From NCBI RefSeq assembly GCF_032191835.1, contig NC_083228.1:59458001-59522000 (forward strand): a stretch of 64,000 nt of DNA, given 5' to 3'. A program made the position numbers and the translations under genes. Of this stretch, positions 8,908 to 64,000 are shown in pieces (positions within the stretch are counted from its first letter, which is position 1; each line of letters opens with the position of its first letter). Below the pieces are notes generated by a model. It did not search any database. It saw only the letters and a list, made by a program, of their open reading frames with translations, and was not told the DNA's origin. This DNA is from Heteronotia binoei (lineage: Eukaryota).

Positions 8908-9437
8908 TAGGGTTGCCAAGTCCAATTCAAGAAATATCTGGGTACTTTGGGGGTGGAGCCAAGAGACTTTGGGGGTGGAGCCAAGAGACATTAGGGGTGG
9001 AGCCAAGATCAAGGCTGTGACAAGCATAATTGAACTCCAAAGGGAGTTCTGGCCATCACATTTAAAGGGACGGCACACCTTTTCAATGCCTTCCTTCCAT
9101 AGGAAATAATGAAGGATACGGGCACTTTCTTTTGGGGCTCATAGACTTGGACCCCCTGGTCCAATCTTTTTGAAACTTGGGGGGTATTTTGGAGAGAGGC
9201 ACTAGATGCTATACTGAAAATTTGGTGCCTCTACCTCAAAAAACAGCCCCCCCCAGAGCCCCAGATACCCACGGATCAATTATCTATTATTTTCTATGGG
9301 AATAAATCTCCCTAGGGAATAAAAGAGTTCCCAGCAGACATTTCCCTCCCCTCCCCCCGCTTTCTGATGACCCTGAAGCGGGGGGAGGGCCTCCAAACCG
9401 GGGGATCCCCTGCCCCACCTGGGGATTGGCAACCCTA
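8908..9437 (+). mobile_element. hAT MITE family C (TAGGGTTGCCA TIR), copy 1
   Basis: TIRs TAGGGTTGCCAA / TTGGCAACCCTA, exact 8-bp TSD GCTCAAGG. Confidence 0.92.
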
Positions 9438-11140: not shown

Positions 11141-11678
11141 TAGGGTTGCCAGGTCCAATTCAAGAAACATCTGAGGACTTTGGGGGTGGAGCCAGGAGAT
11201 TTCGGGGGTGGAGCCAGGAGACATTAGGGTGGAGCCAGAATCAAGGGTGTGACAGGCATATTTGAGTTCAAAGGGAGTTCTGGTCATCAAATTTAAGGGA
11301 CCGCACACTTTTTAAATGCCCCTCCATTAGAAATAATGGAGGATAGGGGCACATTCTTTTGGGGCTCAAAGAATTGGACCCCTTTGTCCAATCTTTTAGA
11401 AATTTGAGGGGGTGTTTTGAGGAGAGGCCCTGGATGCTTTACCATTTGGTGCCTCTATCTCAAAAATTTGGTGCCTCTACCTCAAAAAGCACCACCCAGA
11501 GCCCCAGATACCCACAGATCAATTCTCCATTATACCCTATGGGAATCAGTCTCCATAGAGAATAATGGAGTGCCCAGCAGACATTTCCCTCCCCCCCCCC
11601 TTTCTGATGGCCCTGAAGTGGGGGAAGGATCTCCAAACCAGGGGATCTCCTGCCCCCACCTGGGGATTGGCAACCCTA
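11141..11678 (+). mobile_element. hAT MITE family C, copy 2
   Basis: Both TIRs present and body collinear with 8908-9437. No TSD recognisable. Confidence 0.88.
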
Positions 11679-15350: not shown

Positions 15351-15963
15351 TAGGGTTGCCAAGTCCAATTCAAGAAATATCTGGGGACTTTGGGGGTGGA
15401 GCCAGGAGACTTCGGGAGTGGAGCCAGGAGCAAGGTTGTGACAAGCATATTTGAACTCCAAAGGGAGTTCTGGCCATCACGTTGAAAGGGATGCACACCT
15501 TTTAAATGCTTTCCCTTCGTTGGAAATAATGGATAGGGGCACCTTCTTTTAGGGCTCATAGAATTGGACCCCCTGGTCCAATCTTTTTGAAACTTGGAGA
15601 GCATTTTGAGGAGAAACATCAGATGCTATGCTGAAAATGTGGTGCCTCTACCTCAAAGAACAGTCCCTCCAGAGTCCCAGATTACCTCCAGATCAATTCT
15701 CCATTATACCCAATGGGAATCTATCTCCATAGGGAATAATGAAGTGCCCAGCAGACATTTTCCTCCCCCACCCCCCATTTCTGATGACTCTGAAGTGGGG
15801 GATTGGCATTCCTACTCATAAGTTGCAGAACTTCCAACTTCTTCAAAGTAACACAGAACAACCAAAGGTTCATTCCCCCCGCCCCCTTCTGATGATCCTT
15901 AAATGGGGGAAGGGCATCCAAACTGGGGGATCTGCTGCCCCCACCTGGGGATTGGCAACCCTA
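15351..15963 (+). mobile_element. hAT MITE family C, copy 3 (3' segment duplicated around an insert)
   Basis: Both TIRs present, TSD GTAGAATG / GTGGAATG (7/8). Confidence 0.9.
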
Positions 15964-40946: not shown

Positions 40947-42560
40947 CAGCTGGGCTATTAGGCCTGTTAATTTGGCATTCTAGGGGTGAGAACAGACAGG
41001 CATTTAAAGCCGCCTGGAGGATGGGAGGCAGGTGGACCAAAAAGCGTGTCCACACGCACACATCTGCACATTTTTCAGCCAGGAGGGGCAGGGAGTGGCC
41101 ATTAGGGATGTGCATTCGGCTCAGCCGAGCCGAAAATACAGCCGAATCAACGCTGATTCGGCTGTATTCGGCATTGCCCGCAGCCGAATGCCCTTGCCGC
41201 CAAAAATGCGGCTCCCGAATGCGGCTCGCCGTAGTCTCCCGAACCGCTATTCGGGAGAATACGGTACGGCTGTCAAAAGGCTGCTGTCAATGTAAAATTC
41301 CATAGAAAAGGCGGGAAGCGGATTCTGCAGCCTCAATGGAGCTGCTTGCTTAGCTTCCCGCCTTTAGTGCCCTCTTCCCGCCTCTCCTATAGCCTCCCTG
41401 GGGTCAGGGAGGGGGGGAGGGGGAAGAGGAGCCCCAGCAGCCAATCCAAAGCATGCATTTGCAAAATGCATTGCAAATGCATGATTTGCAGGGCTGTTGT
41501 TGTGTACTGTGTATGTATGTGTAGCTGATGGCCCAGCCATCAGCTACATTGTTATTTTGATCTTTTGCTTACTTGGGTATCCAAGTAAGCAATGTTCTCT
41601 GGCCAATCAGAGAGAGCAGTGCTATTTTTTGAAATTGCTCTCTGTAGGGCCAGAGAACCTTTTTAAGGAGTCTTCCTGCTGGACTCCTCCATTGCTGTGT
41701 TGGTGTATGTGGTGTGGGTTGGTGTGAGAGAGATTGTGCTGCTGCTAGTGGCTGGCCCTTGGCTTCAGCTCCTGCCTGCTGCTCTCTCACTGCCTTACCA
41801 GAGACCTCCCTGGACTCAGAGAAGACAAGGTAAGACAGTTTTGGGGTTCTTGTTTTAGTTTTTGTTGGTAAAAGGACTAGAGTCCCTTTACTTGTTCAGA
41901 TTTGGGTGGGTGAGTGCTGGGTGGGTAGGGTAGCCTATTTGGGGTTGAGGTTAGGTTCTGCTGGGGGTGGGGGGGCCTGGGGTGGAGTGGTTTTGCTAAT
42001 TTGCCCATATCTTAATTTAGTGAGAGGACTTTTTAAAGTGCAGTGTCCTTTTACTTCTCCTGATTTGGGTGGCTTGGATTTCTTGGGGTTAGGGTGAAGG
42101 GGTTTTTTTGGGGGGGGAGTTCCTGTATTATTAAAAGTTGAGTTTTTTACTGTTTCATTGTTTGATTTGTTGCTGCTGTGTTGTGTTGCTGCTGTGTTAC
42201 TTTTATCTTCAGGTTATTGGGGGGGGGGCTGTTTGGCCTAATTTTCATTGTTTTGTCCCCCTTTTCTGGTTCTGGTTTTAGGGGTGGGGGTGTTGTTGTT
42301 GACTGATTTGGCCTGAGTTTTCTTATTGGTGAAAGGCCACTTTTTAAAATCTTGAGTTGCTTTGCTTGGCCTTTTTTTTCCTGTTGTCACTTTCTTGGTG
42401 TGGGGTTGGGGGGGGCTGGGGGGGGGTTGTTGACTGATTTGGCCGGGACCAGCCAACCATCCATCACTCAAAGTAAGTCAAAATGCTTCTTGCTTTGTGT
42501 TGCAGAATGATGTTGAGCTAGGTGTGGTAGTCCACCACTTCTCTTGTTTGAGAGACTAGA

Positions 42561-43170
42561 GTTGTGTTGTTTGGGGCAGGGAAGCTGGCACCTGGGTGAG
42601 AGACCCAGAGGCAGCAGGCTTTTTGTGGTTTGCCAGCTCTCCCCATGTTGTTCGGGGCAGGGCTGGAGAGCTGGCACCTGTAGATTGTGTTGTTTGGGGC
42701 AGGGAAGCTGGCACCTGGGTGAGAGACCCAGAGGCAGCAGGCTTTTTGTGGTTTGCCAGCTCTCCCCGTGTTGTTCGGGGCAGGGCTGGAGAGCTGGCAC
42801 CTGTAGATTGTGTTGTTTGGGGCAGGGAAGCTGGCACCTGGGTGAGAGACCCAGAGGCAGCAGGCTTTTTGTGGTTTGCCAGCTCTCCCCGTGTTGTTTG
42901 GGGCAGGGCTGGAGAGCTGGCACCTGTAGATTGTGTTGTTTGGGGCAGGGAAGCTGGCACCTGGGTGAGAGACCCAGAGGCAGCAGGCTTTTTGTGGTTT
43001 GCCAGCTCTCCCCATGTTGTTCGGGGCAGGGCTGGAGAGCTGGGACCTGTAGATTGTGTTGTTTGGGGCAGGGAAGCTGGCACCTGGGTGAGAGACCCAG
43101 AGGCAGCAGGCTTTTTGTGGTTTGGCAGCTCTCCCCGTGTTGTTTGGGGCAGGGCTGGAGAGCTGGCATC
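42561..43170. repeat. About 5 x 123-bp tandem minisatellite inside element B
   Basis: Units start near 42561, 42684, 42807, 42930 and 43053. The 41-aa peptide repeat in the ORF track confirms a 123-bp period. Confidence 0.95.
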
Positions 43171-43759
43171 TGGGTTTGCTGCAGCCAGGTCTGCAGAGCA
43201 GACCTTGAGCAGATTGTGTTTTGTACTGCCACGACGTTGGCAACTGGGTTTTTATTGGTGCCAGGCCTGCAGGGTTCATAGATTAGATAGAGGGATGTAG
43301 TGCATTTGGGGCCTATAGAGATTCTCTGGTGTGAAGTTAGGTTTGGCTTTGGGTGCCCCAGGAATTGGACCCCCTGGTCCAATTTTTTTTTTGGCCTTGT
43401 GGGTTTTGTGTGGGACAGTCCCCTGAAGCTGCACAGCAGTTTGGGGGGCTCTCCTCAAAACCTCCTGCTCCCCAGAGCCACTTTTCCCACGACAATTGCA
43501 GTGAGGAAGTGGCTCTAATTGGTTTTTTCTCACCATTGGGAGCAGTGTTCCTTTTGGGGTGCCCACAGATGGGTGCTGTCTTTTGGGGCCAGGGGGGTTG
43601 CATGCTGGGGAGTCCCCTGAAGCTGCCCTGCAGTTTTGGGGCCTCTCCCTCAAACCCCCCTCTGGCCAGAGCCACTTTCCCCACAGCAATTGTAGTGGAG
43701 GAAGTGGCTAATTGGGCTTTCCCCATCATTGTTGGCAATGGGCCTTTTGGGGAGCCCAA

Positions 43760-44530
43760 AGACAGGGACCCCCTGGCCCAATCTTTTTGGGACTTGGGGG
43801 GGTTGTAGGGGAGAGTCCCCTGCAGGTCCCCTACAAATTTGGGGGCTCTCCCTCAAACCCCCTCCCCTTCAGGCGGCTTCAATTATACCCTATTTGCCAT
43901 TGATTTCAATGGCCCATAGGGTATAATGATGGAATAGGGGCACCCTCTTTGGGTGCCCCTGGAATGGGACCCCCTGGCCCAATCTTTTTGGGACTTGGGG
44001 GGGTTGTAGGGGAGAGTCCCCTGCAGGTCCCCTGCAAATTTGGGGGCTCTCCCTCAAACCATCTCCCCTCCAGGCGGCTTCAATTATACCCTATTTGCCA
44101 TTGATTTCAATGGCCCATAGGGTATAATGATGCAATAGGGGCACCCTCTTTGGGTGCCCCTGGAATGGGACCCCCTGGCCCAATCTTTTTGTGACTTGGG
44201 GGGTTTGGAGGGGAGAGTCCCCTGCAGGTCCCCTGCAAATTTGGGGGCTCTCCCTCAAACCCCCTCCTCTCCAGGCGGCTTCAATTATACCCTATTTGCC
44301 ATTGATTTCAATGGCCCATAGGGTATAATGATGGAATAGGGGCACCCTCTTTGGGTGCCCCTGGAATGGGACCCCCTGGCCCAATCTTTTTGGGACTTTG
44401 GGGGTTTGGAGGGGAGAGTCCCCTGCAGGTCCCCTGCAAATTTGGGGGCTCTCCCTCAAACCCCCCCCCTCCAGGCGGCTTCAAATATACCCTATTTGCC
44501 ATTGATTTCAATGGCCCATAGGGTATAATA
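43760..44530. repeat. About 3.8 x 201-bp tandem repeat inside element B
   Basis: GGGCACCCTCTTTGGGTGCCC recurs near 43938, 44139 and 44340. Confidence 0.92.
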
Positions 44531-45894
44531 GGGCCGTATATTCGGAAATAGCCGCGCATTACCGTATATGCGGCTATTCCGAATACTGCATTCAGCAGTA
44601 CAGGGGGAATCCGAAATTTTTTTCCCCGTGTACTTCCGAATCCGTGCACTTCCGAATTTTTTTTTTTTTTGCACATCCCTAGTGGCCATTCCAGTAGCTA
44701 CTTTTTTTACCAAACAACCCCTGGGCAGAATTTTTGCTGGCTGCGGTCATCTGATGGTGAGGAAGGCTTTTTTTTTTTCTTTGCTCCCCCCCCCCCTTCT
44801 TCCTTTCCCTGCAAATGATGCAACAGTGGGAGGGCTTCTAGTGCCCTGGCCCTACTCGTGGACATTCTGGTGCTTTTTGGGCATTTAATAAGGGAATTTT
44901 GGACTGGATAGTCCACTGGCCTGATCCAATATGGCTCNNNNNNNNNNNNNNNNNNNNNNNNNNNNNNNNNNNNNNNNNNNNNNNNNNNNNNNNNNNNNNN
45001 NNNNNNNNNNNNNNNNNNNNNNNNNNNNNNNNNNNNNNNNNNNNNNNNNNNNNNNNNNNNNNNNNNNNNNNNNNNNNNNNNNNNNNNNNNNNNNNNNNNN
45101 NNNNNNNNNNNNNNNNNNNNNNNNNNNNNNNNNNNNNNNNNNNNNNNNNNNNNNNNNNNNNNNNNNNNNNNNNNNNNNNNNNNNNNNNNAAACTTTTCTG
45201 TTCATCATACTGTTGTTGCAGACATAGGAGCTCTGCCAATGAAAAGTTGGCACCCCCAGTTGTAGCCAGGTGGCCTTTTATGAGATTTCTGTGTGAGTGA
45301 GTGAGAGTAAAATGTGCAGGGCAGAAAGAGATCATTGAAGATTACTGTGGTATATCTCACAGCACTGGAAGAGATGGTACTTGGCAACATTTTACTGGTC
45401 CTGCTTTTAACAGCTGACACCAAAATTAAATTCCTTCTGTAGATATTAAAAAGGATGAAAGTAGTTCACTGGCTAAGTATCTGCACAACAGGTTGCTTTT
45501 AAAGGCATGGGAAACACAGCCAATAAAAAGCTGCAAGCCCTTCATAAATATTCTTTTTGGGATAACTGCAGAAAAGCTTGTATGAACTTCATATAACTTG
45601 AAATTAATTCATTAATTGCAATACAATCCTCTGCTACCTTGCACAGCAGTTTCCCCGTGTTTCAACCAAAGAAAAGTATGAAAAATAGCTGTTGAAATAT
45701 TTTCTTGAAACCAAGCAAGCTTGGTTGTAGCTTGAGGCAGGGTTCCAGTAGTAGCAGCTGAAGGAAAGGCCTACTAAATGTGTCAGCATATTTTGAGGTA
45801 GAGCAGCTGCCAGGGCCCAGTGTGGGTTGTACACAGTGCTGGCATTCCTGGTGGCATTGGCAACAGCACTCCCATTTGCATACACTGGCCAGTG

Positions 45895-62385: not shown

Positions 62386-63198
62386 ATTCAATACAAATGT
62401 CATAAGTAAATGTAATCTGAAGAGATTTGGACTGAAGCCAGAGGATGGTCAGAGAAACAGGTCTAACAGCAGTAAAAGCAGAAAAAAGGAAAGATCTATA
62501 TAGGAGAAAACTTTTTAAAAGTTTGTTGCTGCCTGTACAAAATTGTGAATAGAAACAGGACTTTATACAAATCGGGAGCCCATTCAATCTGAGCCTTAGG
62601 AAGAAAGGGAAAGGTCCCAGGGCAGTATAGTTATTAGCATGAGAACATTCCTCTATGATCCCAAGGACTGTATAACCAAAGAGAGATGTTTTATAATGTT
62701 TTGTGGAAAGAACCTAGATCCAAAATCCACCAGGCCTTAACAGGCCTCTTACCTGCCTTCCTTGTATCCTTGGCCTGCAGTGTTTTTCTTAACACCATTT
62801 CACAACACCTGGCTTCAACCTTATGAAGTGCCATTCCCTAAGGTCATGCCTATGTAAAAATGGGAGAGGGTGGTTTGTTAGCATGTGAGTGGTTTAGTGA
62901 CCAGATTTATACCATGTAGAAGTCTACTGTGGCACACAGCGTTGAAAGCTGTGTTGTACTGCAGATTTCTCAGGATCATCAGAACATAATGTTTTAATTA
63001 TTTTAATGCATTTTTCTAGCGTCTGGAAGTTTGTGCAAGGGAGCCTTGAAGGCCTTCAAGAAATAATTACTAAGGGCTCAGAAACCAAACAGTCTGGAGG
63101 GCAGAGCTTTCAGTAGTAAGGTAAACTCATTGTTAGGCATAGAATTTATTAGCCTACCCTAACAATGCAATCCTGAACAGAGTTATACCATTCTAAAT

Positions 63199-63859
63199 TA
63201 GGGTTGCCAAGTCCCATTTTAAAAATATGTGGGGACTTTGGGGGTGGAGCCAGGAGACATTGCGGTGGAGCTAGGGGGAGGGGGAAAACAGCGCTGGGGA
63301 GCATGGCTGCTCCTCCGAGATGGGCTCAAGCTGGGCCCATCTCGGAGGAGCAGCTGCGGGGGGGGGGCAGCGACATCGTGCGCTCCGCTCCGCCTCTGGG
63401 TTGGAATCGGGGGCTGCTGCAGGAGGGAGACATGCCGGCCTACCGCGGCCTGCTGGCCCAGTGCCTTGTGGGGCTGCCCGCCCCGCCACTGCCGGCCGCT
63501 GAGCACGTGTCCCGCTTCCGTCCCTTGCAGATTTCCAGCCCCTGCGAGGTGGTCGGGAGGGTGGTGGGGCGGATGTGCGCACAGGGCAAGAAGAACGTGC
63601 TGGCCTCCAGCTACGCCCTGCTGACTGAGAGCAGAGCCCCCTTGCCCGGCTTGCCCGCCCTCGGCAGCCTTTGGCCCAACAGCGCCACGGAGGAGCAGCT
63701 GCGCAGGGAGGGGGCGGCGTCGCCCACTCTGGGATGGGGTGGCTCGCCATGGTTGTGGCACCGTTTCCCCCCTCCCCCCGCTTCTGGTTTTTGGGGGAGC
63801 GGGGGAAGAGGGTGTAAATCCTGGCGTCCCCCGCCAGAGCGGGAGGGTTGGGAAGCCTA
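63199..63859 (+). mobile_element. Pack-type hAT element (family C-like left end) carrying a TERT fragment
   Basis: TIRs TAGGGTTGCCAA / TTGGGAAGCCTA, exact 8-bp TSD TTCTAAAT (63191-63198, 63860-63867). The first ~70 bp match family C MITEs. Confidence 0.9.
63411..63693 (+). pseudogene. TERT: Captured telomerase reverse transcriptase fragment (TEN domain, exon 1 3' part plus exon 2 5' part)
   Basis: GLLQEGDMPAYRGLLAQCLVGLP...QISSPCEVVGRVVGRMCAQGKKNVLASSYALL...WPNSATE aligns with recalled human TERT [23 protein letters not shown]...[32 protein letters not shown]...LPNTVTD and chicken QLSSQSEVITRIVQRLCEKKKKNILAYGYSLL. No RNA-binding or RT domains present. Confidence 0.9.
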
Positions 63860-64000
63860 TTCTAAATCCATTGACATCAGTGGGCTTAGAAAGGCACACC
63901 TCTGCTTAGCACTGCATTGCTAGTCTCGTAATGTTGCTTCTCCAAACCCACAGCCAGAGCAATATGTATTCTAAGATTCCACCATCACGACTGACAGAAC

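Follow-up and report, generated by a model that had tools for sequence, protein, structure and literature searches.

Capture of gene fragments by DNA transposons is well studied in plants, and the animal cases are thought to be mostly single-copy and independent of transposition. Plant Pack-MULEs show a preference for the GC-rich 5' ends of genes, their cargoes are frequently multi-fragment chimeras, and many of them are multicopy and expressed. Elements of the hAT superfamily, to be considered here, are recognised by an 8-bp TSD and by TIRs beginning with YARNG. A survey of 100 animal genomes found 370 Pack-TIRs, of which 208 are hAT, and 4 multicopy (frog, alligator) (Tan et al. 2021, Nat Commun, PMC8277862). 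The sole lizard genome surveyed (anoCar2) contained 0, and microhomology-guided capture at a hairpin or fragile site is the model proposed for these animal elements (PMC8277862). A term search of the supplements of that study found no gecko or TERT entry (PMC8277862). The author of an earlier note on the DNA analysed here knew of no description of TERT-carrying hAT elements in squamates. No publication on a TERT-carrying transposon was found in a literature search, but the novelty was overstated, as Pack-hATs are documented in animals (PMC8277862). The element is a new example of this documented type of gene-fragment capture.

A hAT-type MITE nested in an older repeat

The window, the whole 64,000-nt stretch of gecko (Heteronotia binoei) DNA that was analysed, carries at 63199-63859 a 661-bp non-autonomous MITE of hAT type. 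Its features, and those of its immediate surroundings, are as follows.

63159-63923, unstranded: older palindromic MITE (inverted repeat) that the insertion has divided, with arms at 63159-63196 and 63886-63923
63191-63198, unstranded: left TSD TTCTAAAT, exact (8/8) against 63860-63867
63199-63367, plus strand: left MITE backbone (5' TIR TAGGGTTGCCAAGTCCC, subterminal GGTGGAGCCAGG repeats, hairpin, G-run), the first ~80-90 nt aligning to the sister copies
63306-63354, unstranded: hairpin with a 23-bp stem, arms 63306-63328 and 63332-63354, 96% complementary
63343-63367, plus strand: left copy of a 25-nt duplicated MITE segment, 88% over 25 nt (repeat search)
63368-63412, plus strand: 5' portion of the cargo, probably from the upstream region of TERT exon 1 (similarity at the protein level only)
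63413-63496, plus strand: TERT exon 1 piece (LLQEGD...GLPAPPLPA), lacking the last ~18 nt of the exon (blastn)
63497-63530, plus strand: TERT intron 1 remnant (3' end, with pyrimidine tract and CAG acceptor), collinear with Gekko intron 1
63531-63693, plus strand: first 54 codons of TERT exon 2 (ISSPCEVV...PNSATE), ungapped nucleotide alignment to Gekko exon 2
63688-63712, plus strand: right copy of the 25-nt duplication, overlapping the end of the TERT homology (repeat search)
63713-63859, plus strand: right MITE backbone and 3' TIR, the last ~100 nt aligning to the sister copies
63860-63867, unstranded: right TSD TTCTAAAT, exact against the left TSD

The TSD is an exact 8/8 repeat of TTCTAAAT (63191-63198 and 63860-63867). 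The element begins with TAGGGTTGCCAAGTCCC and has TAGGCTTCCCAACCC at the other end when read on the reverse complement, an imperfect inverse in which both TIRs start with TAGGG and 13 of the 17 terminal bases are complementary (hand count). An 8-bp TSD and short TIRs starting with YARNG place the element in the hAT superfamily. With up to 3 mismatches allowed, the window contains 7 occurrences of the 5' TIR 17-mer where 0.19 would be expected, and the extra ones pair into three sister elements (8908-9437, 11141-11678 and 15351-15963). One sister copy has the TSD GCTCAAGG/GCTCAAGG (8/8) and another GTAGAATG/GTGGAATG (7/8); no TSD is recognisable for the copy at 11141-11678. When the four elements are aligned, their first ~80-90 nt (5') and last ~100 nt (3') prove to be shared. 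The three sisters also have a common interior, AT-rich and CpG-poor, to which the interior of the 661-bp element, with ~70% GC, is unrelated. The sister copies are 530-613 bp long, and the copy at 15351 has an additional ~70-bp internal segment. Among the ORFs of at least 150 aa in the window, the 7 scanned against Pfam yielded only an RVT_1 fragment and no hAT transposase; the 661-bp element itself is without transposase coding capacity and has no Pfam match.

The insertion interrupts an older palindromic repeat (arms 63159-63196 and 63886-63923). In contigs of runs X1 and X3 the two halves of this older MITE lie adjacent in other copies, and contig loose ends at 63860, together with a joint 63185>63868, mark such uninterrupted copies, the joint coming from a paralogous copy of the old MITE. 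Thus a complete 661-bp hAT element with an exact 8-bp TSD, nested in an older MITE, as the earlier note had described it, is what is found: TTCTAAAT stands on both sides, TIRs and sister copies are present, and the inverted repeat of the host MITE is split here and uninterrupted in contigs of other runs.

The older palindromic repeat (GCAATCCT.. and CAGAGTTA.. arms; 63159-63198, 63860-63923) is also abundant in contigs of three other organisms, which makes it a widespread squamate MITE or SINE-like family.

TERT DNA in the interior of the element

At the protein level, the best match of the translation of 63303-63719 is TERT of Gekko kuhli (KAL8173204.1; E 3.9e-19, 60% identity), the next closest gecko TERTs being those of G. 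japonicus, Euleptes and Sphaerodactylus, and that of 63360-63719 aligns to residues 27-135 of human TERT (solved structures, e.g. PDB 7qxa) with E 9e-13. These matches agree with the TERT N-terminal identity proposed earlier for the interior. An HMMER search of 1.8 billion representatives gave 13 matches, of which 12 are TERT N-termini and the sole other one is a repetitive protein (P0011, E 1e-4). The motifs GD..AYR.L..QC.V and KKNVLA..Y.LL are common to the cargo and the TEN domain. A Pfam scan of the ORF and the cargo found no family even at E 10, which is uninformative because the squamate TERTs examined are also without the TEN model PF11474.

At the DNA level, the cargo was compared with the TERT loci of G. 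kuhli (L001, 19.9 kb) and G. japonicus (L002), and also with those of Podarcis and Python. TERT-derived DNA extends over ~63368-63693, about 320 bp, which is wider than the 63411-63693 of the earlier note. In its first part (63368-63412), HMMER pairs IVRSAPPLGW of the cargo with FVRRLGPQGW of human TERT, and the DNA of 63340-63412 has no match to Gekko exon 1 above shuffles (score 16, shuffle mean 20). Positions 63413-63482 are 81% identical in nucleotides to exon 1 of G. kuhli (L001:6099-6168, blastn), and the extension of the exon 1 piece over 63483-63496 is a codon reading by eye, not a computed alignment. Positions 63497-63679 are 74-77% identical to a block that starts ~36-40 nt upstream of exon 2 and runs through the pyrimidine tract and CAG acceptor. 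In both G. kuhli (L001:8830-8868) and G. japonicus, the intron remnant lines up collinearly with the final ~36-40 nt of intron 1. When searched by themselves, the 48 nt of 63483-63530 find their best match in the 19.9-kb locus at exactly the collinear position, with a score of 25 that is within the shuffle range; the significance of the intron remnant therefore lies in its position and collinearity. Exon 2 (63531-63693) aligns to that of Gekko without gaps, at 73.5-74.7% nucleotide identity, and the exon begins where it does in Podarcis and Python. Gekko, Podarcis and Python agree in the codon at which intron 1 lies, and its length in G. kuhli, Podarcis and Python is 2.5-3.7 kb; almost all of this intron is missing from the cargo, as are ~18 nt at the end of exon 1. 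Chance similarity to TERT is ruled out by the E-values and the DNA collinearity. A 22-nt probe for the exon 1/intron junction, searched against metagenomes, matched one microbial contig over those 22 nt only, which is a chance match.

Because the 3' end of intron 1 sits between the exon pieces, the cargo is genomic DNA and not cDNA, composed of part of exon 1, ~34 nt of the intron 1 3' end and 54 exon 2 codons. A processed (retroposed) TERT pseudogene fragment of cDNA origin inside the MITE would account for the exon 1 and exon 2 parts looking contiguous as protein, and the 16-25-nt direct repeat flanking the insert is like a LINE-mediated TSD. However, the retained ~34 nt of intron, the lack of poly(A) and the origin of the piece in the internal 5' part of the gene, not its 3' end, make this extremely improbable. 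The capture of TERT-derived DNA by a non-autonomous hAT, as first proposed, is thus upheld, but what was called a TEN-domain region is a two-piece genomic fragment with an intron remnant. The interior had also been singled out for translating without stops. The plus frame is indeed open, but it passes through the intron remnant and owes its continuity to chance, through a net +15 nt. Its openness is also uninformative, as a GC content of 70% leaves 3 of the 6 cargo frames free of stops.

A genuine TERT 5' end with its other exons beyond the window, a possibility that the earlier note had itself raised, could be suspected from the 141 bp between the element and the window end and from the ATG-initiated ORF that spans the element. 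Against this, the homology stops after codon 54 of the large exon 2 (...PNSATE), where true TERTs go on with [GAT][IV][CR]Q.VLW, and passes into MITE, TIR and TSD. Moreover, the intron is collapsed to 34 nt, the flanks are AT-rich old MITE, and 10 of the 42 alignment columns that are invariant in squamate TERTs are changed. The chance that this is the true locus is close to nil. The window shows neither genes of the TERT neighbourhood nor synteny with it, and its matches to the Gekko TERT loci are only interspersed repeats, many of them common to both (75-87% identity). From these common repeats and the TERT matches, the host is a gecko related to Gekko.

Several observations on the window and the compared loci stand beside these results. 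An ORF at 1830-2669 contains a reverse-transcriptase fragment (RVT_1, E 6e-10), and 2144-2782 matches, with 87.5% identity, the opening 641 nt of L002, where the flank upstream of the G. japonicus TERT model begins; this is an RVT_1-bearing retroelement common to both geckos. The region 42468-43382 has 54-60% GC, strong GC and AT skew and five overlapping ORFs on both strands, and at 43914-44539 there are three tandem ~215-bp units, each matching L001:13378-13604; this is probably a satellite or tandem repeat common to Gekko. The G. japonicus TERT model (P0020) has a spurious first exon (MAENRDASS...), the real exon 1 not being in the model, and the G. kuhli TERT protein (P0001) is tagged 'UNVERIFIED_CONTAM' though its gene stands at a normal TERT locus that contains gecko repeats. 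In Podarcis muralis, an SNF-family (SLC6) transporter gene (L003:31533-49656) is called on the other strand, inside the span of the TERT model. Such a position fits the conserved TERT-SLC6A18/19 neighbourhood, and is also consistent with an over-extended TERT model.

Evolution of the cargo was followed at 162 exon 2 sites (63531-63692), polarised with Podarcis and Python as outgroups at sites where both agree. There are 22 changes on the element branch and 4 on the Gekko branch, a rate of change in the cargo lineage ~5 times that of Gekko TERT. Of the 22 element-branch changes, 12 affect codon position 1 or 2 and 18 are AT to GC; GC3 is 0.91 in the cargo versus 0.65 in Gekko. The dN/dS against Gekko is 0.88 in exon 1 and 0.33-0.43 in exon 2, and from the latter value much of the divergence may predate capture. 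The CpG retention reported in the earlier note is evident: the cargo has a CpG o/e of 0.66, while the sister MITEs reach 0.06-0.18 and the flank 0.10. The cargo is without the usual methylation-driven GC-to-AT decay, and its richness in CpG and GC could come from youth, hypomethylation, biased conversion or an unusually GC-rich host TERT parent. The AT-to-GC bias on the cargo lineage is opposite to what is expected for methylated junk DNA, and the flank has only 40% GC.

As a telomerase, the encoded product would have neither a complete TEN domain nor RBD, RT or CTE, and it would carry the intron remnant in frame together with changed invariant residues. TERT function is unlikely, since the rest of the gene is missing, intron DNA is read through and change has been ~5 times faster, and the sequence comparisons point to a passenger free of TERT constraint, the element alone being most likely inert. 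Co-option would take the form of a chimeric TE-ATG::TEN-fragment peptide that disturbs telomerase recruitment, or of an antisense or small-RNA source acting against TERT. An ATG at 63303 does open a 206-codon frame, the cargo is CpG-island-like (CpG o/e 0.66 at 70% GC), related sequences occur in an RNA library (X1), and the captured part would overlap the TEN/N-DAT region, which is used in telomere recruitment. Yet base composition by itself leaves 3 of 6 frames open, the ORF runs across intron DNA, residues that are otherwise invariant have been substituted, the copies have private nonsynonymous changes, and contigs from an RNA library are no proof of transcription. The 206-aa chimeric ORF, used as a query for homologous predicted proteins, had no match, and thus there are no annotated paralogues. 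Co-option of this ORF, which is without any sign of constraint, is not supported and is judged very unlikely.

Junctions, capture and copy number

On either side of the cargo (63368 to ~63693) stands one copy of a duplicated 25-nt MITE stretch (63343-63367 and 63688-63712); the two copies are identical in their first 16 nt and 88% identical overall. The left copy forms the right arm of the hairpin at 63306-63354, which folds as DNA with -31 kcal/mol (z -7.3; 0 of 200 shuffles equally good) and ends 13 nt before the cargo starts. At the right breakpoint, Gekko TERT itself resembles the duplicated MITE stretch, and this resemblance is plausibly a homeologous landing site (junction microhomology or homeology).

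In DNA contigs of run X2, 63304-63367 is present as backbone through the G-run, and the contigs diverge beyond 63364-63367, placing the left breakpoint at 63367/8. Other runs have 63258-63367 and 63728-63859 at high depth and the cargo at trace depth. Contig depth is very high over 63211-63257 in three other runs and high over 63728-63868 in X1 and X2, and a contig loose end at 63763 represents other copies with a similar upstream backbone. A cargo-free copy of this exact backbone subfamily was not recovered, and the insertion boundaries therefore rest on the duplication and the depth profile. Among the contigs of the runs compared there was no empty-site or junction-bridging contig; the X1 contig at the TERT-to-MITE junction reaches only ~9-15 nt into the MITE side, where the bridging rule is 31 nt.

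From these junction features, we infer a capture mechanism by hairpin break and template switching. The starting state would be a non-autonomous hAT MITE of ~316 bp, with ends recognised by a trans-acting hAT transposase. A break or stalled fork at the 23-bp hairpin inside the MITE would be repaired by DNA synthesis, which would switch template from the MITE to the TERT locus. One jump within TERT would pass over the closing stretch of exon 1 and almost the whole of intron 1, and a return of synthesis to the MITE at the TERT-like stretch would leave the 25-nt MITE duplication around the cargo. The loaded element would probably then have transposed, giving the TTCTAAAT duplication at the present site. 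The model proposed for animal Pack-TIRs (PMC8277862) fits these steps, but the gecko element would have one extra switch inside TERT.

Copies of the cargo other than that in the window are suggested by run X1, an RNA library. Short contigs over 63522-63601 (two variants) and 63570-63702 are 93-96% identical to the window, and each of the variants has private changes, affecting first or second codon positions, where all four of the squamate TERTs compared agree. A further private change, Gly to Ser in the LAFGY motif, belongs to the window copy. The two variants differ by ~3.75% over 80 nt, which was judged too much for alleles, and they look like several independently decaying copies, though they could be orthologues in another species or in pooled animals. 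The number of X1 cargo variants is at least 2, with no contig bridging any TE-cargo junction by 31 nt. A search of sequencing runs with the words of the element found no run containing >10% of them. It is quite likely that the loaded element is multicopy or was mobilised.

The order of events could also be reversed, with an empty MITE having inserted, creating the TSD, and a later break at the hairpin having been gap-filled by TERT DNA, so that the loaded element never moved and is single-copy. In animals, 98.6% of Pack-TIRs are single-copy, and transposition-independent gap filling was considered their best explanation (Tan et al., PMC8277862). Both orders are equally compatible with everything inside the window, and the hairpin-adjacent junction and microhomology fit equally well with either. 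However, run X1 contains at least 2 further cargo variants (93-96%) with private changes, and there is no TERT synteny in the window; the cis bias expected for gap filling is not evident, since window matches to the Gekko TERT loci are only interspersed repeats. Capture in situ is therefore considered rather unlikely. The best explanation, and a probable one, is a hAT MITE with TERT genomic cargo that was captured by template switch, is now an inert passenger and probably transposed after capture.

Comparison with described Pack-type elements

The interior of the gecko element is non-TE DNA that is homologous to a host gene (TERT) and is missing from the sister copies, as in a Pack-TIR, which makes the element a Pack-hAT, or transduplicate. 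This is a clean squamate case with readable junctions (hairpin, 25-nt duplication, two-piece cargo with a splice acceptor) and hints of several copies, which makes the element useful for studying the mechanism of capture. Such fragments can also seed spurious 'TERT-like' gene models and confuse analyses of telomerase copy number and expression in reptiles. More tentatively, and with less than even probability, a lineage of gecko hAT MITEs may have repeatedly captured GC-rich gene 5' ends at an internal hairpin and then amplified them, the TERT element being one multicopy, transcribed member that is rich in CpG and GC through hypomethylation or biased gene conversion. If true, this repeated capture of first exons or CpG islands by a hAT MITE would be the animal counterpart of rice Pack-MULEs.

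In relation to vertebrate TERT, the cargo is homologous to the TEN domain over human residues 27-135, but it amounts to only ~105 residues' worth, includes intron-derived codons, has conserved residues replaced and is without RBD, RT and CTE. Pack-MULEs of rice and Pack-CACTA likewise have gene fragments transduplicated between TIRs, but belong to the Mutator or CACTA superfamily, have a TSD of 9-10 bp or 3 bp, and are found in plant hosts. Pack-hAT-N8_XT of Xenopus tropicalis, which carries a CAPSL 5'UTR fragment, is likewise non-autonomous and of the hAT type, and combines TIRs with an 8-bp TSD (PMC8277862). The gecko element resembles the animal Pack-hATs in having a few hundred bp of host-gene DNA internally, microhomology at the breakpoints and possibly several copies (PMC8277862). 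It differs from the animal Pack-TIRs described (PMC8277862) in its gecko host, in its TERT cargo with two non-contiguous pieces of one gene, and in the unusually long 16-25-nt flanking duplication with an adjacent strong hairpin.
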